NCBI GenBank assembly: GCA_029953675.1
Contig: JAMWBK010000006.1
Location: 1,488,001-1,552,000, forward strand
Length of the DNA stretch: 64,000 nt
Direction: 5' to 3'
From: Rhodosorus marinus CCMP1338
Taxonomy: Eukaryota; Plantae; Rhodophyta
The stretch's first letter is position 1; every line of letters starts with the position of its first letter. Under the pieces are notes generated by a model that was given only the letters and a program-made list of their open reading frames with translations, was not told the DNA's origin and did not search any database. Position numbers and translations under genes: made by a program. Positions 15,119-57,458 of this stretch are shown here, in pieces.

Positions 15119-18100
15119 TTAGATATTCGCTCGTAACTGATCCAAGACCTGGTCTTTCTTGTTTCCGCGTGTTCTGAGCTGAACCCTGATCTCGTGCCGT
15201 GTATCGGCAGGGAGAGGCTCCCGCGGATTTACTCGAATGAGTACGCCAGCAGCTTTCCTGCTTGCTGGTACTCGTCGTATAACCCTGTGGAGCCTCTCGC
15301 CTGTTTCGCGGTCGTGAACTGATGCATAGATGTTTGAGCGTTCGGCTGCTCGGTATTTAACGCGCAGCTCAATCGGTTCTCCCCTTCGCACTGGTGTTAC
15401 AATCGATACAGCCGAGAGCCTATTCCGCGTCACAGATGATACAGATGATGGGACCTCGCTCCTTGGTCGAGCTTGAACGACATGCTTGGCAAACGCCACT
15501 GCTTTGCTTCTGTGTTCACCACGTGGCCTCAGGTCGAGATTGAGTACATGGGGAAGTTCGCGGAGAGCCTCCTTCCCTTTCCTCGGTATAACAACTGAGA
15601 CGCTTCCTTTCCCTTTCCGCACAGGAACGACGAACCCGTCGAGATGATTGTACGGTCCCAGTTGCCTAAAATTCACACGGACATCGGCCGCGAACGGTGC
15701 TGAATATTCCATATCGAACACGAACGTCCCAACAGTTGGAACATGCCTGGGCGCGGAAGCGAACCGCAAGTAGGAATCCAAATTGTTCTCTACATAACGT
15801 GCAACAAATGTCCTCCCATCCCCATCCTCCGATTTGACCGTCTGTACGTGGTCACCACCGTGATCCCATCGATCAAAGTAAAGACCGTTGGCAGTCTCAG
15901 GCGCGAAGACTTGTACTTCAGAGCCAACCACAACCAGCTGTTGATATGGAGCTGGAGCACTATATCCATTGAGTGCCAATTGAATCCCTGGGGGATCAGA
16001 CTCGAATCTGAAAGGTACCTTTCTCGTCCCTATATATCTCTCCGTAGTGCCAATCTGGCCGTCGTAGTCGACTATGAGCCTCAGTTGGTACGCAAAGTTG
16101 TCCAAATGATCCAGCGCATCAACGGAACCGCTCATTTGGCCTCGGAATGAATACTCGATGTGATCATGACATTCGTTATCGTCATTGTAGACGCAGTGAA
16201 GAATCATGTACTCCCACCGAAACGCGGACTCTGGCACGACGTCTCCGTTAGACAGTGTCGCTCGCCCACTGAAATTGATCGTTTCTCCAACCGCCACCAG
16301 CCTTCCTTCTGCTGGCTCGAGGATCTCTGCGTTGATTGTGTAGCCATTCTCCTCAGTGGTGAAGACCACCCTGTAGTTCTCCTCCATCAAGTTTCCAGCG
16401 ATATCTCTAATGCCTCCAGCTCCGCCTTCGATGACAACGGCATACTGAGTTCCATGGTCAAATTCCGCGGTAATCCTCAATCCCAGTCCCGCAGAGTATG
16501 TGTAGTCAAAGGGCAATCTGTCCCCACCAATGGCACGAATATAGACGCCCCCTGCGATCGTGCTAGGATCCAATGGCTCCGAAAGCGTCACAAGGACAGG
16601 CGTGGTGATTGGCACATCCGTGCTCCCAGAGGCAGGAGTGACCGACTCCACCGTCGGTGGCGTCTGGTCTACAGCACCACCAGTTGTTTGAAACTCCCAA
16701 TTGAGATTACCTGGTTGGGTGTTCCCGTCCAAGTCTCTAATTCCATCTGCGCCTCCCTGAACGACCACTCTGAACCGACTGTTGCTAGGCAACGGTGTCG
16801 ATGGTTCTACTCTGAACGTGCGTGAGGCGAACGATAGTGAAACCTCAGCTGGAATCACCCCGCCTCCGCCAACATTAACGAGTTGGATTCTACCGGCGAC
16901 TTCGGCAACAGTCTTTGAGAACCTTCCGGATATGGTCAACCCGTCCTCGGCACTAACCGCTTCTCCCGGCGGAGGGAACTGCTGATCAAGAGTGATGGGG
17001 CTGTCATCCCTTGTATACGTGCACCTCGCCAGATCACCAATTCCACGCACGTTAATCCAGTAGAGGGAGTTATCAGGCCCAACCTTGAATTGAACTGGCG
17101 ATTCAAGGATGTCGATCCTCTCAAGATCCTGCACTCGCTCGTCTTGCTCATTCAGCCGCAAGAATCCGATCCAGCGTCTAGCCTGATCCGCGTAGATCAC
17201 CACGTTCCTATACCTGAAAGGCCAACCTGGGATATCGATCTTGCCACCCACCATCGAGGAACTTGTACCCTCACCATGGTCCCACCAAACGACTGGTCGC
17301 TCATGCTCGCTATCAGGCAGTCTCCTGCACTCTGCATCGTTTTGGTATTCGTGTCTTCTGAGCGTCGATTCCCAGCATGGCCAGCCCATATTCCTACCGC
17401 GCTTGATGACCGACATTTCCTCTTGGGTCAGCCACTGGGTGTCACCGGCGTACACGTGGTCCTCATTGTCCGGGTTAACGTGTAGTTTGAACACATTTCG
17501 TATTCCAAAGGCGTACATCTTGGAGTCCCTTGAGTTAACATCTCCGTTGTACCAAGGATTCGTTGGCAGGCCGCGTCCTTCTTGGTCGATGAGCAAAATC
17601 TTGCCGTTGTACGTCCCAAACTGCTGTGATCGAAGCGCCACTGGGCTGATAATTGCAATCGCTCCATCGCCAACAGCGACGTAGATTGTACCATCCGATC
17701 GAAACGTTAGTGCTCCGCCCACGTGACTCTTCCCTTCCGCGCCAATGCAGTCGGAGTCCGGACCAAAGGCCGCACATCCAGACCCGTTCAGACTCCCAAG
17801 GATCGTCCTGCGAGTTCCGACCTGCTCGTGCAATCCATTCGGGGCTATCCTAACCTTCATGACTCGGGAGGTCTTCTGTCCTTCGTAAGCTGCAGGTCTG
17901 GTGTCGTGTTCGAAAACCAGGAAGAAGTAGACCCAAGGGTTTTCGGCATAGTCAGGTGGAATAGCAATGCTCATTAGGCCACGATCGTGGAACGTATTGA
18001 TCATCAGGGAGACATCAATGAATGGTGTGTCCCGAAGACGACGATTCTCCACAGTATGTACGATACCGTAGTTTTCCGCTACAATCAGGGTTCCGTCCGG

Positions 18101-18724
18101 AAGAAACAAAAAGTCAACAGGTCGATTGATTGGGTCCAAAACCCATCGCTCTGTTCTAAACCCAGTAGGCCATGTGGGTGACAGAACAGGACGTTCTGCG
18201 CGGTTCTCCAGGCTCGGACGGTCGGATTCAGTCATGTCCGTAGTAGTCTCCCAGACCATCTGATCGGTCTCGCTGTGAAAGCAACCCCTTCTCTGGTCCT
18301 TGGCCATTTGATGCATCTTTAGGATATCTTGATCAGTTTCGTCTTCGGTAGGAAAGCATAGTCCCTCTTGAATAAGCCTATGGGCTAGAGGCTCCCCAGT
18401 TCTATCGTATGCCCTCCTAATGCACCCTTTTGGGTGGTGCATAATACGGTCATGCTCCGGTTCATCCAAATATACGCCTGCAGAGTGCACCAGGGAATGA
18501 AGCCGCATCCTTGCAGCGTGTCCACATGGCGAATTTCGGTCGGGAGCAGTCCATCCTAGCAACTGTATGAACTCCCTGTCGGTTTCGTTGTACTGATCAT
18601 TTCTCACCAGAATACTACCTGAGAACGCGTCGAAGTTCCTCGGTGCTGGGTAAAGTGCGAGCGCTGTTGACAGCCAGCAAGCGAGCGCGGCGAATGCGAT
18701 GTACAAATACACTTTTCCACACAT
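15119..18724 (-). CDS. Secreted multidomain GSDH/PQQ-type sugar dehydrogenase-like protein, paralogue 1 (1201 aa, intronless)
   Basis: Signal peptide MCGKVYLYIAFAALACWLSTALA (ATG 18724; upstream track start is TTG). SNase-like segment IQLLGWTAPD...PCGHAARMRL...RRGCF. Propeller motifs DRGLMSIA, SHVGGALTFRSDGTIYVAVGD, YAFGIRNV, GRNMGWPCWE. Two Big_5-like Ig domains (DQTPPTVESVTP...LSEPLD...DIAGN), a PKD-like domain, one SDPPG repeat and two LRPRG-type C-terminal modules. Confidence 0.9.
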   Translation of the reverse strand: MCGKVYLYIAFAALACWLSTALALYPAPRNFDAFSGSILVRNDQYNETDREFIQLLGWTAPDRNSPCGHAARMRLHSLVHSAGVYLDEPEHDRIMHHPKGCIRRAYDRTGEPLAHRLIQEGLCFPTEDETDQDILKMHQMAKDQRRGCFHSETDQMVWETTTDMTESDRPSLENRAERPVLSPTWPTGFRTERWVLDPINRPVDFLFLPDGTLIVAENYGIVHTVENRRLRDTPFIDVSLMINTFHDRGLMSIAIPPDYAENPWVYFFLVFEHDTRPAAYEGQKTSRVMKVRIAPNGLHEQVGTRRTILGSLNGSGCAAFGPDSDCIGAEGKSHVGGALTFRSDGTIYVAVGDGAIAIISPVALRSQQFGTYNGKILLIDQEGRGLPTNPWYNGDVNSRDSKMYAFGIRNVFKLHVNPDNEDHVYAGDTQWLTQEEMSVIKRGRNMGWPCWESTLRRHEYQNDAECRRLPDSEHERPVVWWDHGEGTSSSMVGGKIDIPGWPFRYRNVVIYADQARRWIGFLRLNEQDERVQDLERIDILESPVQFKVGPDNSLYWINVRGIGDLARCTYTRDDSPITLDQQFPPPGEAVSAEDGLTISGRFSKTVAEVAGRIQLVNVGGGGVIPAEVSLSFASRTFRVEPSTPLPSNSRFRVVVQGGADGIRDLDGNTQPGNLNWEFQTTGGAVDQTPPTVESVTPASGSTDVPITTPVLVTLSEPLDPSTIAGGVYIRAIGGDRLPFDYTYSAGLGLRITAEFDHGTQYAVVIEGGAGGIRDIAGNLMEENYRVVFTTEENGYTINAEILEPAEGRLVAVGETINFSGRATLSNGDVVPESAFRWEYMILHCVYNDDNECHDHIEYSFRGQMSGSVDALDHLDNFAYQLRLIVDYDGQIGTTERYIGTRKVPFRFESDPPGIQLALNGYSAPAPYQQLVVVGSEVQVFAPETANGLYFDRWDHGGDHVQTVKSEDGDGRTFVARYVENNLDSYLRFASAPRHVPTVGTFVFDMEYSAPFAADVRVNFRQLGPYNHLDGFVVPVRKGKGSVSVVIPRKGKEALRELPHVLNLDLRPRGEHRSKAVAFAKHVVQARPRSEVPSSVSSVTRNRLSAVSIVTPVRRGEPIELRVKYRAAERSNIYASVHDRETGERLHRVIRRVPASRKAAGVLIRVNPREPLPADTRHEIRVQLRTRGNKKDQVLDQLRANI

Positions 18725-21700
18725 AGTTAGTCCGGTATTCCCTCCTCCGTCCTCGAAAACAGATCCCTCTTCCAACGCTGCACCTTCTACAACAGTTGCT
18801 TTTCGCTTGGCCACCCACAAAAGCCCTCACGACGTTCCGTCAAATACCTCAACAGAGGATGATGTGCTGCGGTAACTACTTGTATTTCTCTTACTGCCCC
18901 AGTCTGACTCGTTCAAAACAAAATCAAACCCTCTTCGCTGACAACGTCCATTGCGAAGATATTCGCTACCCACGGTATAAAGTTGTTGATTCTCTGGATA
19001 GCAATTCGTCACGGTCTGGTGTATGGGAGCTTATGTTAACTGCAACAACGAAATTTCAGAAACGTCTAATTGCAACCCCGCGCCAGAGCTTTCCTCGGCG
19101 TGTATCCCATGTGCAAGCAGAATTCCGCAGACGAGGATGTATCAGTTTGCCTATAGATTTTGTCTCGTGACCCCTATGGAAACGTTCGTGGATGATCACT
19201 GGGGCAATTCGCGACTGATTTCGTTTTGAAACAATTAAGCGCGAGCCGTATCACTGGTCAATCCCCTCCGCTAAATTTGGAAAAGAAAAGCCTCTTCTGT
19301 TCAACACCCCGGAGTAGACGTACAACGATGAAAAAAAGCCAAGGGGTTGATATTTGGTGGAACAAAAACCCCCCAAGAAATCCCTAGGGATTCTGTTTCA
19401 CTCAGTGCCGAGACCAGAGCCACCGTTTGCTCACAAACGCTGAACTCTAGTGGGTAAAAGAATCCGATTTTCCCAGGAGACCCATGGGAAGAGGGGGGGT
19501 AGTAGAGACTTCCCAAGGCAGGGTTTTAGGCTCACAAATCCTTCAAAATTGAGACAATGTAGAAAAGGAACAAAACTCCACCAGCGGAAGAGCATTCAGA
19601 GGGAGGTTCTCTCGCTTGCTCTAAATCTCACACACACACCCCCTAAGTCCGCGAGTCCTGATTTTCATTCAGCATTTTCCGATCTGGCTTTCCGACCGAG
19701 GGAGTCGATACATATCAGGGTCTTCATTTTTCTTAATTGAACGGACGTTACCAGCTCAAGCTCACTCCGACTGCTGCTGAACCCCATACACCCTTCCTAA
19801 CCACGACAATAAACCCAATGTCCGGATGAAAAACCATCCCACAAACAACAAAAAAAATAAATCCCGCAACATCCATCCGCTCTCAAGATATCTAACTTTC
19901 AATATAATTTGACCACTTCCTGACTGTTCCTAATGTATCAGAAACGCAGGAAAGCTCGGAAGGTCAATGGATTCGGCCAGTACCGCATTTTTAATGGGTA
20001 GGGGGTGGGGTTAGGGGGAGCGAAACCGAAAAAATGATCAATATCCTGACCAACAAATGGGACAGAATAAGTGATTGGAAGTTAAGAAATCTTCCATTTG
20101 AGTATACATTATTCGATAATACATGCAGTTTTGATAGGTATTGATTGTACTTAACAATAATAACTCCTTATGATTGGTTATTGTTGATAATGATTGGATT
20201 AGTCTAAATTATTAATTAATACAATTTTGTCCCGTTTACAATAGGAGTTGCTCAATCACCTCACCACCTCCCCTAACACCCACCCCCCAACAACCCCTAC
20301 CATTTTTCGAATAATTATTGTTTCAGCTGCAAAAAAAAGAGGATACGTGCAGCGATTCCTGCCCCCTCCCAGACCCTGAACACCCAACACAAGGAAAACA
20401 GTAAATCTATTTTCATAAGACGTTAAAATATATTTTTTTTGGTCGGAATCTTCGTTTGTATTGTCAGTATTTCGTGTGTATGTTTTTTTTTGTTTTTTTT
20501 TCGTGTTCTGTCTTTGGTCGGGGTTTTATTATTAATATTCTTCTTTTTGGGTGTTTATTAGTTCTTGGAAAATATATGTTAAAAAGGTCTATTTTTGACA
20601 AATGGGGTGTGAATTGAGCGTTTTATCCTCCCAATTCGGATTTGAGGTGTTCGTTGGCGGTTTGTTGTTTTATATGATGGTTTATCGGGTAGAAATTTAA
20701 CTCGTTCTTAGTTTTGGGTTTGTGAAAGTATTCAATATATATGGTATAGAGCATGTTTGGTGATTTATCGATAAATAATTTATAATATACATGGGTGATA
20801 ATTGAGAGGTATGTGTTGTGAATTCTTCCGGTTCGTGAAGGAAGAATGCTGATTTTTCAGCGTGGGCAGCTTGTTTTTCTTTGGTTTGGTGGTGGGTTCC
20901 GGGACGTTTGTGATCATAAAAAACTTCCAAGTGCTGGAATTCGAGAGGGGGCTACTGAGAGTCAGTGACTTGAGTCAAGGGATGAATCTGGCTTGAGCTT
21001 GCAAGGGAGAAATGGAACGGTTTAGGGTGCGGTAAAACCCTCCGCGGTGCTAAGCGGTAAACACTGATTGACCTCTTTGACCTCCGAGCGCTCCAGTCGA
21101 CAGTTGCTCAACGATGAAGCCAATGAAAATGAGGTTTCGGTGAAAAGGAGTGGACGAGGTGAGGACCTTGCGAGAATTTCCCTCTCGAATACATTAAATT
21201 GACCGTCATGAGATGACCTGGGGATTCTCGTTTGGCCAATTGAAGATCCTCTCCTGGATCCGATGAAATTTTATGATTGCTTCTCTAACGAAAATTGGCT
21301 CCGGGGAGATAGGGTCCCCCATTCTATTGGTTTCATCGCTGGGAGCGGCACAAGGTCAATCACTTCTGCACGCTGAATTCCTCTCTCCGACGGGGCTGAC
21401 CTCCTGCTCCATGTGGTCAACAACCACACGAATGCTTCCCCTGGACAATAGGACCAGAGTTCACCTAAGATCAGAGCTCTCCATGGCCCCCCCCGAAAGG
21501 TTACTAACACTGAAAACAAACAAGTTTACGCTGCACGAGGAATAGTCCGTCCCAATCTAAGGTACGCCTGTGAACGTCTTCCTTGGAGATTAGGAAACAA
21601 AACGCCGGTTGACCCTGTAAGTCAAGCAGGCAACCCCGTCATTCTCTCATCTCTCATCCTCTCTCAAAGCTCAATTGAATTATAAATACAATTAGACGAG

Positions 21701-26100: not shown

Positions 26101-27674
26101 ATTATAGGCTTAGCATGTGAGGCTACATCAAAGCTCTCACACTCCGGATTATTGTACCATTGCGTGTTTTTCACATCCGACTCGAAACAAGGCCATCCGT
26201 GGTTGTTCCCTTTCCTCAGAACGCTGATTTCCTCCTTTTTATTCCACTGCGTATCTCCAAAGTAGAACGTAAAGCCGTCCAATGGGCTGCGGTGCAGATG
26301 TAGTACGTTCCGTATGCCGTAGGCGTATATTTTTGATAATTTATGGATAGGGTTTCCGGTATACCACGGATTGTCTTCTACGCCAAGACCGAGAGATCCT
26401 TCTGCTGTAGAGACGCGGATAACTTTCCCGCTGTAGGTGTTTGATCGCTGGGCCTTTAGGGCGTCTTCCTTTATCCATGAAAACCCACCATCACCAACTG
26501 CGACCAAAAGATTTTTCAACTCGTCGAAGTTGATTCCCCCACCCACATGACTCCTGCCCGCTGCACCCAGGCAATCTGCGTGCGGGTCATTGCCATCAAT
26601 AGTATCGCACCCATAACCAGACCGCGTGCCCACAACTACCTCGCGCGTTTCAGGGAGTTCTTCCTTACCGTCCGCGCTAAGCTTCACGCGCATCACGCGA
26701 GCTGTGCGGGCCGACTTGTAAGTCGCAGGGTCACTGCTGTGCTCATATACTAGGTAGACGTAGACCAGAGAGTCTTCGTCAAAGCTTGGCGAGAGTTTCA
26801 TAGACATTACACCTCGGTCGTTGTAGTTGTTCACAAAAGTCCGCCAGTCCAATACAGAACCTCCTACTACCTTTCCGTCAGACGCAAGTCGAAACAATCG
26901 CCCTTCGTTGAGTGCTACGTAGATAACGCCTGGTGACGCAAACTCGATATCAACCGGCCTAAAAAGGAAGCCAGACGTCCACTCTTCAACCTTAAAACCA
27001 GTTGGGAATTCCTCGAGAAGATCAGTAGCACGACCAGCAGCGTTGACTTTCACGTGACTTGTTTCTCCACTGCTTCCTTCCGATGCCGCCCTAGTCTTGT
27101 CTCCATTAAACCTATATCGCAATTCGTCATTTTTATCGCTTATTGTCGTGAATTCCTCTCGGTCAACTGCCTTGTTTGTCCTCCAATAGCAGCCTCTTCC
27201 CTCAGCGCGCATTTTCTCGTTGAGAGCCGCCAGTATTGCGTCGTTCTTACAGCTTTCCCCAAGCCCGGCGAGCCCGGACTTAATCATACTCCTTACAATT
27301 CCACGCACTTGCTGAGACAAAAGCACCTCTCGTTCGGTGCCTGGGCCACTGCATACCTTCAACCTCACCCTTTCTCCCGTGAGAAGCTGATGTAGTTTCA
27401 ACCTCGCTGCCAGACCACATGGATGGTTCCTGTAAATCGTTTCAATACAGGGAATACGCAGCAGCTCATTGTTCAGATTATTTACTGTGACGTTAGCCCC
27501 TATGGCTCTTCCCACCAGCATGCCATCGTAGGCAAACCAATCCCTGTACACATGCACATCACGAGTACAATCTTTCCTCTCTTTTCCATGAACTCCATCT
27601 ATCCCAAATAATACACAGAATGCGAGAAGAACCAAAAGACTCTGCGCCAGGGGCCCTCTTATTCTAACCTCCAT
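23175..27674 (-). CDS. Secreted multidomain GSDH/PQQ-type sugar dehydrogenase-like protein, paralogue 2 (1499 aa, intronless, seven C-terminal repeats)
   Basis: Signal peptide MEVRIRGPLAQSLLVLLAFCVLFGIDGVHG. SNase-like RNHPCGLAARLKLHQLL...GRGCYW. SHVGGGINFD...VAVGD, YAYGIRNV, NNHGWPCFE. Two Big_5-like domains, a PKD-like HCPFTEDPTCHDH, and seven ~75-aa S[QD]P[PN]G...W.[DE]G..R repeats. Confidence 0.9.
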   Translation of the reverse strand: MEVRIRGPLAQSLLVLLAFCVLFGIDGVHGKERKDCTRDVHVYRDWFAYDGMLVGRAIGANVTVNNLNNELLRIPCIETIYRNHPCGLAARLKLHQLLTGERVRLKVCSGPGTEREVLLSQQVRGIVRSMIKSGLAGLGESCKNDAILAALNEKMRAEGRGCYWRTNKAVDREEFTTISDKNDELRYRFNGDKTRAASEGSSGETSHVKVNAAGRATDLLEEFPTGFKVEEWTSGFLFRPVDIEFASPGVIYVALNEGRLFRLASDGKVVGGSVLDWRTFVNNYNDRGVMSMKLSPSFDEDSLVYVYLVYEHSSDPATYKSARTARVMRVKLSADGKEELPETREVVVGTRSGYGCDTIDGNDPHADCLGAAGRSHVGGGINFDELKNLLVAVGDGGFSWIKEDALKAQRSNTYSGKVIRVSTAEGSLGLGVEDNPWYTGNPIHKLSKIYAYGIRNVLHLHRSPLDGFTFYFGDTQWNKKEEISVLRKGNNHGWPCFESDVKNTQWYNNPECESFDVASHAKPIIAWPHESSTHSSMAGERIRIGNFPRRYYDRLIYADHAAGWIGFAELDENDVFVKDVERWQLTDVNPVQVKAGLDNALYVVSVYNAGTILRVTYEADITPLVLEAVNPNDGEQVSSSNFDEISGIFSKSVEPDTVTSETVFIRNDTGGVVATNLEFDYERRTFIVKPTVTLIEDRDFWLVIKGGPSGVLDLDNNVLENDIVTLFRLTSSSDTTPPTIVRTLPASDETGASQSKSITIEFSEEIDVTDILDKITVVTESGFVFPMQNFRWVDSSRQLKLQDDLFYGTRFTVTVLGGAAGISDLAGNRLASEYSWSFTTEERGATVVAEILSPTHGETITVGDTINFKGRAFDAEGYEISSSYLRWQILIKHCPFTEDPTCHDHVEYYKEGVSEGSIVAPFHFDNFFYEVGLFAVYNNQIGQAFATVKTWRALFTLESQPPGLPLALNGVLRTTPFTEKVVRFSPVLLYAPDGAGPMTFMKWAEGGQREKQVTAERATTFKAVYGVLYSMETSPTGIRATLDRKGAIAPFGKVVEVGARIQIAAPATSKGLVFQGWLDGVTTRIRWITVGHTPLSFRALFAEASQIVTLVIESQPNGAPVTVNDETQAAPFTVEQQTGSVTAISCARKSNGMVWVKWMEDGGDRERQIVATQTRTFTCVYGYELEVNSSPWYVKIQAKGKGGETPYTWAFEEAETVELTAPEFSGELKFLKWSDGDLNRVKLVEMNGPQKVTAVYGAKRTITSDPPGLVVRINADTYTTPVTMYHPVGQYLRLEPKPMENSDILEFSHWKEYPNKERITTILVRRSQLTYTAVYKAVASGVPITVTSQPEGLVLTFTKGNNSQVKKATPFVTYMTVGNIATVTAPQSLEELRFSRWEDGVSTREREVTATEISQTFKAIYSNKVILQSIPSGLDIMFNWENVTTPAESYAEIGSEMKIYGWQHLNNLKFDQWAEGGRMRKTVVKTEETQTFVAQYVPA

Positions 27675-35600: not shown

Positions 35601-36711
35601 CATCTCCAACAGTCACGACCAGGTTGTTATCCTCGTCAAAGGCGAGCCCACCGCCGACGTGGCTCTTGTCATTCACTGAAAGGCAGTCCGCATTTTTATT
35701 TGCTTTGAGTGCTTGTTTGCATCCAAACCCTTCCTCCTTTCCGATGACAATCTCCCGAGATTTCTTGTCTTCGCGCTTCCCATTAATAATCATTGTACGA
35801 ACAACTCGTCCAGTTCTCGCCTTCTGGTAGTCGGCAGCTCGCTTCGTATGGTCATATACATGGAAGAAGTACAGATAAGGCTTCTGTTTGTAGTCATTGG
35901 CGATGGCTATCGACATGATTCCACGGTCGTGATAGTCGTTGGTCTCATCCCTCACATCCACTACGTCTTTCTGAATGATCCGCCCCTGCTTACTGAGCCG
36001 GAGGATACGTCCCTCGTTCAGTCCGACAAGGACATTGTCATTAGGCTCGAAAAGGAAATCCACGGGTCTGAACATGACGTCCTTAGAAAACCTCTCCTCT
36101 TCAAATCCAGTTGGCCAGTTGCCCTCGCTAAGGAAGTTCACGCGGGAGGAGACATCAAGTCTCGGTCCCGTGCTAAGCCTAGAGAAGCTACGAATGTGCT
36201 TCACCTCATCGCCACCTCCTCCATAGTATTCCAACTTCACCAGATTCTTGAAGTAACAGTTTTCCATCCCGGCTTCAAACTCCCGTCTCTTGTTAAAGTG
36301 CATATCCACGAGCTCCGAATCCGCAGTCTCATCAGCGCCGGCGAGGTTCCGCCCAATCATTATCTTCGCAATTGCCTTGAGGGAGTCGGAGCTCTTCGCG
36401 ACGAACATGTTCTCCTCCGTATCCCACTCGATTTCCAGATCTCCAATCGCGGGAAGGAGCTGCTCCAACTTCAGTCTCGCGGCTAAGCCGCAAGGTGAGT
36501 TCCGATGAATGACATCCCAGTTCACGAGCTTGATTGTCAGCGTATCCGTGCAGTTCGAGCAGTCCTGCAGAATAGTGTTTCCATTGTACGTCTGAAATGA
36601 GCTATCGATAGTCTGCACTATTGGCTTACCCTCTGCCAATCCCACAAGCAGGCAGCCGACCAAAAAAACCAAAGCTGCGCTCCGTCCGACACGCATCATC
36701 TTTCTTGCCAT
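32677..36711 (-). CDS. Secreted multidomain GSDH/PQQ-type sugar dehydrogenase-like protein, paralogue 3 (1344 aa, intronless, Lys-rich)
   Basis: Signal peptide MARKMMRVGRSAALVFLVGCLLVGLAEG. SNase-like RNSPCGLAARLKLEQLL...MENCYF. SHVGGGLAFDEDNNLVVTVGD, YATGVRNP, GANFGWPCFE. Two Big_5-like domains, a PKD-like HHCSYTTPPSCHTH, one SQPAG repeat, a P/T linker GGTPTIGPAPPTPNPTGG and three [LI]RPRG-type modules. Confidence 0.9.
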   Translation of the reverse strand: MARKMMRVGRSAALVFLVGCLLVGLAEGKPIVQTIDSSFQTYNGNTILQDCSNCTDTLTIKLVNWDVIHRNSPCGLAARLKLEQLLPAIGDLEIEWDTEENMFVAKSSDSLKAIAKIMIGRNLAGADETADSELVDMHFNKRREFEAGMENCYFKNLVKLEYYGGGGDEVKHIRSFSRLSTGPRLDVSSRVNFLSEGNWPTGFEEERFSKDVMFRPVDFLFEPNDNVLVGLNEGRILRLSKQGRIIQKDVVDVRDETNDYHDRGIMSIAIANDYKQKPYLYFFHVYDHTKRAADYQKARTGRVVRTMIINGKREDKKSREIVIGKEEGFGCKQALKANKNADCLSVNDKSHVGGGLAFDEDNNLVVTVGDGEFASVVPSAINAQRLTSLSGKILRISTKRATLGEGLKNNPYFDGNGKHIRSKIYATGVRNPLHIHPSTTNKNRFYIGDVQWSSMEEIDVVTAGANFGWPCFEGTLPLKFWAKTDECKKLIANKKHKEPLIEYPHFEGKSYAVMIGERISIKGWPNRYYDVLTYADNAHRFIGFAKLNNQDVLVEDLDRVYVSAAPVQVRAGPDNSLYFISVYGIGELTKVTYTRDKTPVKVNLTPDPGTQIKTRNSVFNGKFTKSVEPDSATRQNVFLRNAKGVRIAADYKFDYGRRSFELTVTKALTAGEKVSLVVKSGRAGVVDLDGGVLNKDLIYTYTVSATVDKKDPTVVSTRPKHKEEDVDPSDDIRVRFSEALDASTVSGSYTISKKGAGEVNGGEAEYDASARAITIKGANLDFRTTYIVAFKAKNGVKDLAGNSLSENFQFSFRTGKNPSSIDASITKPSKTLKVEVGDSIPFAGVAIDTRNGNNIPREAFGWQLLIHHCSYTTPPSCHTHSAGQAEGTRSGTFKAATHEDNFFYEVLMVVTWRGETVQVSQFVETKKVRFNFESQPAGVPLSLTGYTVNAPFSELVVLGSDAQVFAPETYGPNNQWKFVRWAGGGPRIQNIKILKATTYRAIYAKETSGGTPTIGPAPPTPNPTGGNIVVTNPRKFLRLSGGIPVSVTFTAPAPAEISLSIQVATESGAIVNQRFNVPQGSGKRDLTLRGYGQLKEGETYRVRVDLRPRGAEFSDRYAGTIYIALASSRPGIPSRSSVRFVRKAHSDRISADGPYYVKTSWAASEPSDIFLTIQSTKEKNRIAVAKKEVGRGYGVEDIGPLDFSGLTPQRGPYNVQLAIRPRGTMASQNKATVINKVNVQQHDHVTILGSSTIIPKQGPLKVEVAWVALVVAAQGRDLFVELHTLGKNSVIRKKISVKPGPGQATINLNYNNLDPSLVYELRAVLKTKTGLFEDRDLRLMIVEQ

Positions 36712-51695: not shown

Positions 51696-52670
51696 TCAGA
51701 GAAGATAATCGGAAATCTGTGCCTCCCTTCCAACGTCTGCGAAATCCCCTTGGAATCGTTTTCGTCTGAATTCTCCAAAGCTTAGTGCTTTGTATTTGCT
51801 GGCTGAGCAGCTTACCGGATCCGTCACGCTTTGAACAACGATGTCCGGTGACGGGTTCCAGAAAAATGCAATCGAAAGCCGGGGATCTGATGTTTCAGTT
51901 TTAACTCTGTGAAGAATTGAGCGGAATCGATCGTCGGAGAGAACCTGCAGCATGTCCGCAACGTTGAAACATAAAGCGTCCTCGACTGGTTTCACGGTCC
52001 GCCAGGCTTTGTCCTCGCGGTCCGAACCATCTCCGTCTCCCGTGTACACCTGAAGACCAGGAACGCCATTTGTAGCAAGCAGAGTGAAGAATCCAGCATC
52101 CGTATGTCTCTGGATCCCCAACGATGTCTCATGTTGTGAAAACTCTTCGACGTAGTAGTTCACTCTACAGAACGATGAGTGCCCTTCGAACAAACTCCGT
52201 ACGCTGTCCCACGGAAGGCCCAAACCGCGAGTGGTCAAGATTTTCGTCAGCTTCCAGCAAAGCTCTTCCACACGAGAAAAATACTCCTCCAAAGATCTCC
52301 TGAACTCCGGCAGCTCCTCAGGCCATCGATTTACGCCATCGACATCAACACCGCAATCCTTCCCGAAATCAAAGGCCTCCTTCGCGTCTCGTTCGTTCTT
52401 CGTCAGCTCGTCATTCATAAATCCCCGTGCATTGTCCTCGGATCTCTTCACCCGCATCTTCACGCCGCTATCAGACTTGAAGAAGCGCTCAGACTCTTCC
52501 CTCCCCTTCGCCAGCAGCTCAACCGGGATCCCATGTCCAACCAACTGCCCACATCCAAACCCTTCACAGGCTTTCACCAGCGCATCGAGCGTTTCAGAGG
52601 CTTCCTCGCCACTTTCATCCACCAGGAGGCATTCAATATTGATCAATGGTAACTCTACGAGCTCGTCCAT
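51696..52670 (-). CDS. 2-oxoglutarate/Fe(II)-dependent oxygenase (DIOX_N + 2OG-FeII_Oxy, IPNS-like), 324 aa, intronless
   Basis: N-terminal ACEGFGCGQLVGHGIP; iron ligands RHTD and HRV; 2OG-binding RLSIAFF; RVNYY. Confidence 0.92.
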   Translation of the reverse strand: MDELVELPLINIECLLVDESGEEASETLDALVKACEGFGCGQLVGHGIPVELLAKGREESERFFKSDSGVKMRVKRSEDNARGFMNDELTKNERDAKEAFDFGKDCGVDVDGVNRWPEELPEFRRSLEEYFSRVEELCWKLTKILTTRGLGLPWDSVRSLFEGHSSFCRVNYYVEEFSQHETSLGIQRHTDAGFFTLLATNGVPGLQVYTGDGDGSDREDKAWRTVKPVEDALCFNVADMLQVLSDDRFRSILHRVKTETSDPRLSIAFFWNPSPDIVVQSVTDPVSCSASKYKALSFGEFRRKRFQGDFADVGREAQISDYLL

Positions 52671-55144: not shown

Positions 55145-55837
55145 AGTGTAGAAAACGCAAAGGGTTATGGTCGGTGCGAAGCACGAAGCGTTGCGCCTCT
55201 ATATATGTCCGCCAGTGTAGTATTGCCAGGGTCAACGCGTATAACTCTCGTTCGTATGTTGAATATTTTTCCTCCGTAGTGGTGAATCGCTGTGAGAAGT
55301 ACGCAATTGGATGTTCTCCATCTTCAAAGGTTTGCAACAACACAGCCCCTACTCCCCGCAGTAGTTGCAAGCAATGTTGGTGTAGTTACGCTTCTGCAGC
55401 GCTTGCGTTCCGGGTTGGTAAATGCGTCCAGACCTAAATTCCGTGGTAGCATAGGGGGAGTTCAACAGTTGCCATCCTACAGCAGGGGCGGAGGCAATGA
55501 ACAGGAACAGATGCACGGCGTTGGACAACACCCCCCACGGAATTTAGGTCTGGACGCATTTACCAACCCGGAACGCAAGCGCTGCAGAAGCGTAACTACA
55601 CCAACATTGCTTGCAACTACTGCGGGGAGTAGGGGCTGTGTTGTTGCAAACCTTTGAAGATGGAGAACATCCAATTGCGTACTTCTCACAGCGATTCACC
55701 ACTACGGAGGAAAAATATTCAACATACGAACGAGAGTTATACGCGTTGACCCTGGCAATACTACACTGGCGGACATGTATAGAGGCGCAACGCTTCGTGC
55801 TTCGCACCGACCATAACCCTTTGCGTTTTCTACACTC
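55144..55837. repeat. 303-bp inverted repeat (55144-55446 / 55535-55837) with an 88-nt loop
   Basis: Arms are reverse complements with one mismatch seen (55204/55777); the ORF track gives mirror translations on both strands. Confidence 0.95.
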
Positions 55838-57458
55838 GCAAAAGGAGCTAACCAAAAGACAAGCGAGATATGTAAATCGCTTACTGCCGTTCTCCTTTGA
55901 CATCGAGTACAAGAAGGGAACAGAAAATATCGCGGATCCTCTCAGTCGAGGCGCGATCAACCAGATGGCGATCTCCAGTATCTTACCCTACGAAGATTGG
56001 TCAGGAGCTTACTTGCAAGATCCAGATTTCGCCGCAGTTTACTCTGAAGCAGCAAAGTACGCGGAGCAAGGATTTCGTAGAAAGCGGGACATCTTGTACA
56101 AACATCATCGCGTTTGTGTGCCGCGGAAATTCGTACCGGACTTGCTGCGGAAACACCACGAAGAGCCAACGGGGGGACATTTTGGCCTTCATAAGACGGT
56201 GAACCTGTTAAAGAGGCGTTATTACTGGCTGACCTTAAGAGACGATGTTCAGTCCCTGATCCGAACCTGTGAAATCTGCCAACGGCAAAAACCACTGAGA
56301 GCTTCTCAGGGATTTCTACAACCACTTCCTGTACCTGAGTCAAAGTTGGAGGACATCACCATGGATTTCATTGTTAGTCTTCCCATGACTAAGTCCGGAG
56401 CTGACGCAATTCTAGTGATTGTTGACCGTTTCTCAAAATACGCGAAATTTATCGCTACAAGGACGGATGCAGACGCTCGTATGACGGCAGAGCTGTTTTT
56501 CGAACACTGGGTGCGTTTTGCAGGCTTACCGCGGACGATAGTCTCCGATCGAGATTCCAAGTTTACCGGGCTCTTTTGGCAGCAACTAATGAGGATGCTT
56601 AAGATCAAGACTCACCTAAGTACGGCCTATCACCCGCAGACGGACGGACAAACAGAGCGGGTCAACCAAACCTTGGAGACTTACCTCCAGTGTAACAGTA
56701 GCCAAGCGTCATGGGACTCTGATCTTCCCATGGCGGAGTTGGTCTACAACACGCAGATTTCGGAGTCTACTAAATATTCGCCCTTCGAACTTCTGTACGG
56801 ACGAAACCCTGAGCTACCGGGAACATTAATAGTACCACGTGCAGAGGAGGCTATCGTTTCTCCCTTACCTGAGGCAGCCGAAGTTCTTCTACGACATCAA
56901 CACGACCAATGCCTGGAGGCACGAAACAACATGCTTTATGCTAAGCAAATCCAGAAGATACGATATGATGCGAGACGGCGTAATCCTGACTTTGCCCCTG
57001 ACGAGCTGGTCTTATTATCGACCAGAAACCTGCCATTGCAAGACCCTAAACCGTTTCGGCCGCGGTACATCGGCCCTTTTCGCATCAAACGGAAGATAAA
57101 TGATGCCGCCTATACGCTAACGTTGCCAGCAGAGATGAAGATACATCCAACGTTCCACGTTTCCCTGCAGAAGAAACTTATGGGAACCCCCGACAACGTT
57201 CAACTCAACATACCCGATTTTGCGGCTGAAGTAACAGGAGGCGAAATCAAATCCGTACTTGGTCATCAGATGAAACCAGAGGGAACCAGCGAATATATGG
57301 TATACTTCGAGGGGGAAACAGTAGCTGATGCTCGATGGATTGCAGCTCACCAGTTGCCACAAACCTCTGCTACAAAAATGCAAATTCGCTACTACATGAA
57401 CTTTCATCGTGCTGCTGAATCTGCCCGACCCCGCGCTTCTTCGGTGCGAGGGATGTGA
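55611..57458 (+). pseudogene. Truncated pol: RNase H (N-terminally deleted), integrase (HHCC, DDE, GPY/F) and chromodomain
   Basis: GVGAVLLQ...IAYFSQ...YERELYAL...TDHNPL; HHEEPTGGHFG...CEICQ; MDFIVSLP, IVSDRD, HPQTDGQTERVN; YIGPFRI...HPTFHVS; chromodomain IKSVLGHQ...EYMVYFEG...ARWI. Confidence 0.92.

Follow-up and report, generated by a model that had tools for sequence, protein, structure and literature searches.

A degenerate SNase-like domain, predicted to be catalytically dead and of bacterial origin, precedes the sugar dehydrogenase propeller in three tandem genes of the red alga Rhodosorus marinus

Staphylococcal nuclease and the bacterial thermonucleases (SNase family, PF00565) are secreted, stand-alone enzymes in which an oligonucleotide/oligosaccharide-binding (OB) beta-barrel is followed by three helices; their key positions are D19, D21, R35, D40, E43 and R87 in Staphylococcus aureus numbering, and Y85, Y113 and Y115 are the tyrosines that hold the nucleotide. 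The SN domains of Tudor-SN (SND1) are without the canonical catalytic residues and have non-nucleolytic or binding roles. Accessory domains on a sugar dehydrogenase are known from fungi, where the AA12 pyranose dehydrogenase CcPDH consists of a cytochrome b domain, a pyrroloquinoline quinone (PQQ) propeller and a CBM1 module (PMC4332668, PMC6881789); the literature consulted on CcPDH mentions no nuclease-like partner. This report concerns three tandem genes (designated P1, P2 and P3) in a 64,000-nucleotide stretch of nuclear DNA, here called the window, from the red alga Rhodosorus marinus CCMP1338 (GCA_029953675.1, contig JAMWBK010000006.1, near 1.50 Mb), in which a degenerate SNase-like domain stands N-terminal to a GSDH propeller. 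Literature searches returned no description of an SNase-GSDH pairing, of the bacterial clade described below or of these algal genes.

P1 (15119-18724, 1201 amino acids), P2 (23175-27674, 1499 amino acids) and P3 (32677-36711, 1344 amino acids) are long, intronless open reading frames (ORFs) that follow one another head-to-tail in 22 kb of the minus strand, with spacers of approximately 4.5-5 kb. The three products share one layout, in which a hydrophobic signal peptide is followed by a domain of about 125 residues, a GSDH propeller, two Big_5 domains and further beta-sandwich repeats. The existing annotation of the three proteins lists only GSDH and Big_5, and the domain of about 125 residues was left unannotated by a Pfam scan; it spans residues 24-152 in P1 (18269-18655), 36-166 in P2 (27177-27569) and 30-158 in P3 (36238-36624), all on the minus strand. 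The P1 domain is supported by AlphaFold2, Foldseek and hhalign, that of P2 by alignment with P1 and the family together with a hidden Markov model (HMM), and that of P3, the most divergent copy, by alignment and HMM.

An earlier interpretation made from the letters of the window alone (the sequence-only reading) had proposed a degenerate thermonuclease domain at this position, to be abandoned if the predicted fold proved to be of another kind. The AlphaFold2 model of the P1 domain, built from a seven-sequence alignment (predicted local distance difference test, pLDDT, 78; predicted template modelling score, pTM, 0.74), shows strands, a helix, two strands and two helices, with strands and helices in the order seen in SNase and with the barrel-then-three-helices arrangement of that superfamily. 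When this model was searched against the PDB with Foldseek, the top 50 matches were all staphylococcal nuclease (E 1.0e-6 to 3.4e-6, probability 1.00, template modelling (TM) score 0.62-0.74), and the proposed fold thereby withstood this check.

Homology was also apparent at the level of sequence profiles. A word-indexed search with a 3-sequence alignment of the N-terminal domains returned nothing, not even the orthologs; relatives were found when a 7-sequence family profile was run exhaustively with HMMER against 1.84 billion representative proteins, which gave 68 proteins at E<1e-3. These comprised 13 long proteins of the algal type and 55 short ones, 54 of which are SNases according to Pfam, and the Pfam-verified SNases were matched at E 1.6e-8 to 1e-3. 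Comparison of the 13 algal domains with 46 canonical SNases by hhalign gave a probability of 99.3% (E 1.8e-20, 111 columns), and an HMM of the 46 Pfam-verified SNase domains scored P1 at 50.3 bits, P2 at 47.2 bits and P3 at 15.5 bits (maxima of 2.9-4.8 bits in 300 shuffles per paralog), values which are inflated because the canonical set had itself been retrieved with the algal profile. On the combined basis of structure model, exhaustive search, profile-profile comparison and paralog scores, the N-terminal domain of P1-P3 is a homologue of the SNase (thermonuclease, OB-fold) superfamily and has its fold.

There was no comparable link to SND1, which was the top match in a sequence-profile search of the PDB at a non-significant E of 0.22. 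The algal proteins resemble SND1 in having a domain of SNase fold without the canonical catalytic residues; unlike P1-P3, SND1 is intracellular, combines a Tudor domain with four to five SN domains in tandem, and is without the disulfide pair or a propeller partner. Each of P1-P3 has a single SN-like domain, and the Pfam scan gave no match to a Tudor domain in any of them. As judged from sequence similarity, the algal domains group with bacterial modules and bear no specific relationship to SND1.

All matches were placed in one alignment and the six key positions were compared. The catalytically canonical SNase matches hardly ever depart from D19, D21, R35, D40, E43 and R87; at these positions P1 carries S, S, Q, T, D and G, P2 carries D, M, R, E, Y and R, and P3 carries N, N, K, D, H and N. 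The algal domains thus differ from thermonucleases in that Ca2+ ligands (D21, D40), catalytic residues (R35, E43, R87) and nucleotide-binding tyrosine positions have been replaced; equivalents of Y85, Y113 and Y115 are replaced or deleted in all algal members, as they are in all members of the bacterial fusion clade. The sequence-only reading had noticed that the catalytic Arg/Asp/Glu and DRYGR motifs are substituted (for example QLLGWTAPD), and this was seen in the alignment also. The substitutions differ from paralog to paralog, and the core positions (DG, PCG.AA, L..L, GL, GC) are kept, a pattern that reads as a retained scaffold with an abandoned active site. Because the domain departs from a thermonuclease in every catalytic-residue test, it should not be filed as one, and it is predicted to be a catalytically dead pseudo-nuclease. 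There is no sign of decay: Rhodosorus strains are 83-91% identical to one another in the SNase-like domain and 86-91% in the propeller, so that the former is under purifying selection and conserved like the propeller.

Two motifs which the sequence-only reading had picked out in all three copies were recovered in place. RN[SH]PCG.AAR..L..L lies at 18521-18538 in P1, 27414-27431 in P2 and 36487-36504 in P3, and the terminal motif is RGCFH in P1 (18275-18289), RGCYW in P2 (27183-27197) and ENCYF in P3 (36250-36264), all on the minus strand. The two motifs contribute a conserved pair of cysteines (Cys67 and Cys148 in P1), and the number of cysteines per domain is even in each copy (4 in P1, 6 in P2 and 4 in P3). 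Among 59 non-algal relatives, the cysteine of PCG and that of GC.W were both present in 30, both absent in 27 and present singly in 2. The suggestion that the pair could form a disulfide was strengthened by this pattern (both or neither in 57 of 59), which indicates that it very probably does so.

The association of the pair with a dead domain did not hold, since the pair is inherited from intact nucleases: its carriers include a subclass of thermonucleases with a complete catalytic set (D.DE...PCY...GCKW), and its occurrence in catalytically intact enzymes marks it as ancestral and not as an innovation of the dead domain. In this subclass D.DE replaces DAPE (P0018, P0023, P0025, P0027, P0039, P0045-P0051 and others). 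The sequences suggest that a disulfide-stabilised nuclease lineage was the ancestor of the dead modules. An N-x-T glycosylation sequon is also present within the SNase-like domain (P1 N46-E-T, 18584-18592; P2 N61-V-T, 27486-27494; P3 N53-C-T, 36547-36555; minus strand). It occupies the same hairpin loop in 12 of the 13 algal domains and is found in none of the bacterial relatives, and so looks like a eukaryote-specific adaptation acquired after transfer; together, the even cysteine counts and the sequon fit passage through the eukaryotic secretory pathway.

The second module was identified as GSDH by Pfam (77-99 bits in P1-P3 against a cut-off of 25; E 5.5e-28 in P1, where it lies at 17045-18127 on the minus strand), and two Big_5 domains were found in each protein (1.6e-26 in P1). 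By Foldseek, the six-bladed propeller matched the PQQ sugar dehydrogenases 3a9g, 2ism and 2g8s (target TM 0.81-0.84), while AA12 structures matched it far more weakly (E 1e-8 to 1e-10). The SHVGG and GIRN motifs of P1 align with HNGG/HSGG and GHRN of 3das and 2ism, and H314 (the catalytic His) and R389 and N390 (the PQQ-contacting RN) are invariant across the algal and bacterial set. Judged on fold and on these His and RN motifs, the propeller looks competent as a PQQ-type dehydrogenase. P1-P3 share the six-bladed PQQ-type propeller with CcPDH and with soluble Asd/sGDH, and with CcPDH the presence of accessory domains in a secreted eukaryotic protein; they differ from CcPDH in that the N-terminal accessory domain is a pseudo-nuclease without haem-binding residues and not a cytochrome.

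The exhaustive search also returned bacterial proteins with an SNase-like module N-terminal to GSDH. One of these is HEX8600601.1 (P0041) from a Chloroflexia metagenome-assembled genome (MAG), which combines SNase-like and GSDH domains with NPCBM, Big_5 and three SLH domains; P0053 adds PA14 to the pair, and the truncated proteins P0037 and P0071 likewise have an SNase-like module before GSDH. A scan of bacterial genomes (one genome per species; the query was a 3-sequence alignment, and the single search pattern was taken from the SNase-like domain) located 15 loci, all in MAGs, with an SNase-like module directly upstream of GSDH, either fused to it or in an adjacent gene. They belong to Acidobacteriota (Bryobacterales, with three copies in one MAG, Solibacteraceae, Terriglobales and Luteitalea), Chloroflexota (including Anaerolineales) and Actinomycetota (for example Acidimicrobiales), and their architectures combine the SNase-like and GSDH modules with Big_5 (1-4) and NPCBM (1-5), and with fn3 or PA14 in some.

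Several comparisons tie these bacterial proteins to the algal ones. The P1 propeller reached 189-236 bits with each of the 15 fusion-type propellers, compared with 41-104 bits for non-fusion propellers, and in a neighbour-joining tree of propellers (100 bootstrap replicates) the algae were monophyletic in 100/100 and grouped with the fusion-type bacteria in 98/100. A direct BLASTP match was obtained between the N-terminal domain of P1 and those of the bacteria (E 7e-9 to the L001 locus), and the region after the propeller is colinear between P1 and its bacterial relatives. The order of signal peptide, SNase-like module, GSDH and Big_5 is shared, as are the loss of E43 and the N[ST]xCG loop with its GC.W cysteine (RN[SH]PCG with RGCFH, RGCYW or ENCYF in the window, NTxCG with GC.W in bacteria). 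Most members of the bacterial clade have Gly in place of R35, E43 has given way to Q, M, R, P, S or H, and DGDT and the R87 equivalent usually survive; in the algal copies these too are lost. The bacteria further differ in adding NPCBM, PA14, fn3 or SLH domains, while the algal proteins are without NPCBM and have the sequon, extra cysteine pairs and different C-terminal repeats; identity between algal and bacterial proteins is only 29-36%.

In the search of 1.84 billion proteins, the only non-bacterial members were from Rhodosorus, from Bangiopsis sp. CCMP1999 and from a few unplaced contigs of transcript length. These sequence comparisons indicate that the fused architecture is of bacterial origin, and the bacterial SNase-like, GSDH and Big_5 fusions, for which the sequence-only reading had suggested searching, are likely donors. 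The simplest reading is that Stylonematophyceae received the gene once, fused and partly degenerate from the outset, and that it was then duplicated. At least four paralogs are present in Rhodosorus, the fourth (KAJ8902619.1, 1362 amino acids) being encoded on another contig. Pairwise identity among P1-P3 is 41-44% for the propeller but drops to 24-29% for the SNase-like domain.

At some of the bacterial loci the two modules are encoded separately. At L035 (P0070) a secreted SNase-like protein of 169 amino acids (498-1007) is followed by GSDH (1004-2095), the genes overlapping by ATGA, and adjacent genes were found at L013 (5848-6378 and 6315-9833), L015 (5902-6387 and 6404-11626) and L014 (5899-6402 and 6449-7987). 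Each gene of the pair has its own signal peptide at L035, L013 and L015. The downstream ORF at L033 is without a signal peptide, and this locus may be a frameshifted fusion and not a true split. Two further candidates for free-standing SNase-like proteins, P0017 and P0043, were rejected as their sequences stop where the contig does. When one pair is met in both fused and split form, this is a classic (Rosetta-stone) sign of joint action, and its occurrence here suggests that the two modules act together.

A two-domain AlphaFold2 model (580 residues, 15 sequences) gave a pLDDT of 83.9 and a pTM of 0.85. The propeller accounts for about 400 residues (approximately 69% of the model) and the N-terminal domain for about 130, and, by our own arithmetic and not from the predicted aligned error, a pTM of 0.85 needs at least about 0.64 per remaining ordered residue even if the propeller is perfect. 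This value implies that the N-terminal domain is placed with confidence relative to the propeller, and a fixed position on the propeller is tentatively proposed from the model.

The following account is proposed. A bacterial gene that joined a degenerate SNase-like module, a subclass of PQQ-type propeller and Big_5 would have been transferred into stylonematophycean red algae and duplicated in Rhodosorus until there were four copies or more, of which three form the tandem array in the window. The algal copies would then have lost their remaining Ca2+ and catalytic residues and gained the N-glycosylation sequon. The secreted module would no longer cut or bind nucleic acid at the old active site; it would instead serve as a dedicated non-catalytic partner, docked on the propeller, which adds to the stability of the latter or else helps to form its recognition surface for an extracellular glycan substrate. 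To this account as a whole, that of a dead, disulfide-stapled SNase-like module of bacterial origin acting as a non-catalytic partner of the propeller, we assign a probability of roughly 70%.

A number of points weigh against this account. The isolated P1 domain reached only 14 bits (E 0.072) with the Pfam SNase model, under its 21-bit gathering threshold, and the isolated P2 and P3 domains gave no match in the same scan, which is a further difference from thermonucleases (the relatives P0013, at 21.1 bits, and L004, at 25.1 bits, are above the threshold). The retrieval of the canonical SNase set with the algal profile, mentioned above, belongs here too. The disulfide is deduced only from co-occurrence of the cysteines, and the case for docking consists of pTM arithmetic from one AlphaFold2 run on a shallow alignment of 15 sequences. 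In that model residues 140-158, between the domains, have a pLDDT of <50, which would also fit a flexible tether. The link of all 15 of the 15 loci to one propeller subclass was partly built in by the scan with an SNase pattern.

The strongest competitor builds on the function which the sequence-only reading had given to the domain, that of a binding module for extracellular DNA or polyanions; the module would be freely tethered, its polyanions might be the sulfated polysaccharides of the red-algal matrix, and it would anchor or target the enzyme. OB folds bind both oligonucleotides and oligosaccharides, the segment between the domains has a low pLDDT, the P2 domain is basic (net charge +5, pI 9.2), and the presence of NPCBM and PA14 in the bacterial relatives marks these as extracellular, glycan-directed proteins. 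Against this, the positions that would contact a nucleotide (equivalents of R35, Y85, R87, Y113 and Y115) have disappeared just as the catalytic residues have, two of the three domains have an acidic net charge (-4 in P1, -8 in P3), and the sole polar residue kept from algae to bacteria is the Asn of N[ST]xCG, which sits beside the stapled loop. Net charge and pI did not discriminate, as the canonical SNase matches have a median net charge of 0, and polyanion binding is neither proven nor excluded by them. The pTM of 0.85 favours a fixed placement on the propeller over a free tether. The split forms are a further argument: a targeting tag made as a protein of its own could do nothing for the enzyme without binding to it, so a separately secreted targeting module makes little sense and the split pairs point to a partner role. 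The proposed binding function is thus unsupported and probably wrong in detail; we consider it unlikely, and a role as propeller partner the more likely of the two.

It is less likely still that we are dealing with a pro-domain at the N-terminus, or an intramolecular chaperone, required for nothing but folding or secretion of the propeller and later removed. Its N-terminal position, the low-confidence segment that follows it and its genetic linkage to the propeller would all suit such a role, but no processing site is evident, the domain has a conserved sequon and cysteine pairs of its own, as is typical of a mature extracellular domain, and its conservation between strains equals that of the catalytic domain.

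We regard as very improbable the explanation that hydrolase activity has survived, with the domain acting as a nuclease or phosphodiesterase through rearranged catalytic residues. Remnants of an active site can be pointed to, as P1 keeps an acidic D at the E43 position together with an APD motif, P2 keeps equivalents of R35 and R87, and many members of the bacterial fusion clade keep DGDT and the R87 equivalent. By the count made in the analysis, however, at most two of the six key residues survive in any one paralog, the substitutions differ from copy to copy, unlike those of a selected active site, D21 is lost in all three window copies, and in most bacterial fusion members R35 has become Gly and E43 has become Q, M, R, P, S or H.

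Bacterial contamination or misassembly, which the intronless genes and bacterial closest non-algal relatives might bring to mind, can be set aside, given that the genes lie inside a 2.47-Mb long-read nuclear contig of the R. marinus genome (PMC10250338) beside a Ty3-type fragment and a plant-type 2-oxoglutarate (2OG) oxygenase gene, have orthologs of 83-91% identity in independent Rhodosorus transcriptomes and a relative in Bangiopsis sp. CCMP1999, share only 29-36% identity with bacterial proteins, and carry a conserved algal N-x-T sequon that bacteria do not have.

Further details of the three genes were recorded. P1 encodes a signal peptide (MCGKVYLYIAFAALACWLSTALA; 18656-18724, minus strand), read from the sequence as a hydrophobic N-terminus, which is followed by the SNase-like domain, GSDH, two Big_5 domains and C-terminal beta-sandwich repeats (ORF and Pfam). 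The mechanical ORF of P1 begins 32 codons upstream (18725-18820), at a TTG at 18820; the ATG at 18724 was taken as the start because the annotated gene has 1201 amino acids and the transcript ortholog P0008 has 1199. P2 is a paralog with the same N-terminal architecture and extra PEGA-like repeats, and its transcript orthologs P0002 and P0003 (R. marinus, MMETSP) are 86-87% identical to it; the transcript ortholog of P3, also a paralog, is P0009 (R. marinus, MMETSP0011).

After the Big_5 pair, approximately 200-370 residues past the propeller, P1-P3 contain a domain with a conserved W...I.HC.Y....CH.H motif (in P1, for example, WEYMILHCVYNDDNECHDH), which is also common to the bacterial relatives. 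This domain may correspond to the PF27624 'Porph_assoc' matches precomputed for P3, P0004 and P0005, and it could bind metal. Elsewhere in the window, an ORF on the plus strand (55611-57458) with RNase H, integrase zinc-finger, integrase core and Tf2-type SH3 domains is a pol fragment of a Ty3/gypsy-type retrotransposon, and a single-exon gene on the minus strand (51696-52670) encodes the plant-type 2OG-Fe(II) oxygenase (DIOX_N and 2OG-FeII_Oxy).

The fold described here is a known one; what is new is its pairing with GSDH, which is widespread and has reached red algae by horizontal transfer. About 125 residues of these red-algal proteins, previously unexplained, are now identified as SNase-like, and the case adds an example in which a whole multidomain extracellular enzyme passed from bacteria to a red alga and was there multiplied in tandem. 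It also brings to light a bacterial clade, not described before, whose degenerate SNase modules are genetically locked to one propeller subclass, in fused form or in two-gene operons. The series from active nuclease through partly degenerate to fully dead domain is a natural one and should be useful for studying the re-use of enzyme folds. A more speculative extension, which we hold to be possible but doubtful, is that a distinct and widespread class of extracellular PQQ-type dehydrogenases depends on the disulfide-stapled pseudo-nuclease as an obligate accessory subunit, fused or co-secreted, which would be docked on the propeller and contribute to the substrate site or be needed for activity in some other way. 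Red algae would then have taken over a two-component enzyme of soil-type bacteria and would use it to modify extracellular glycans of their own; if true, the obligate-subunit role would be one not previously known for the SNase fold. In practical terms, the N-terminal module should be kept or co-expressed when these dehydrogenases are produced.

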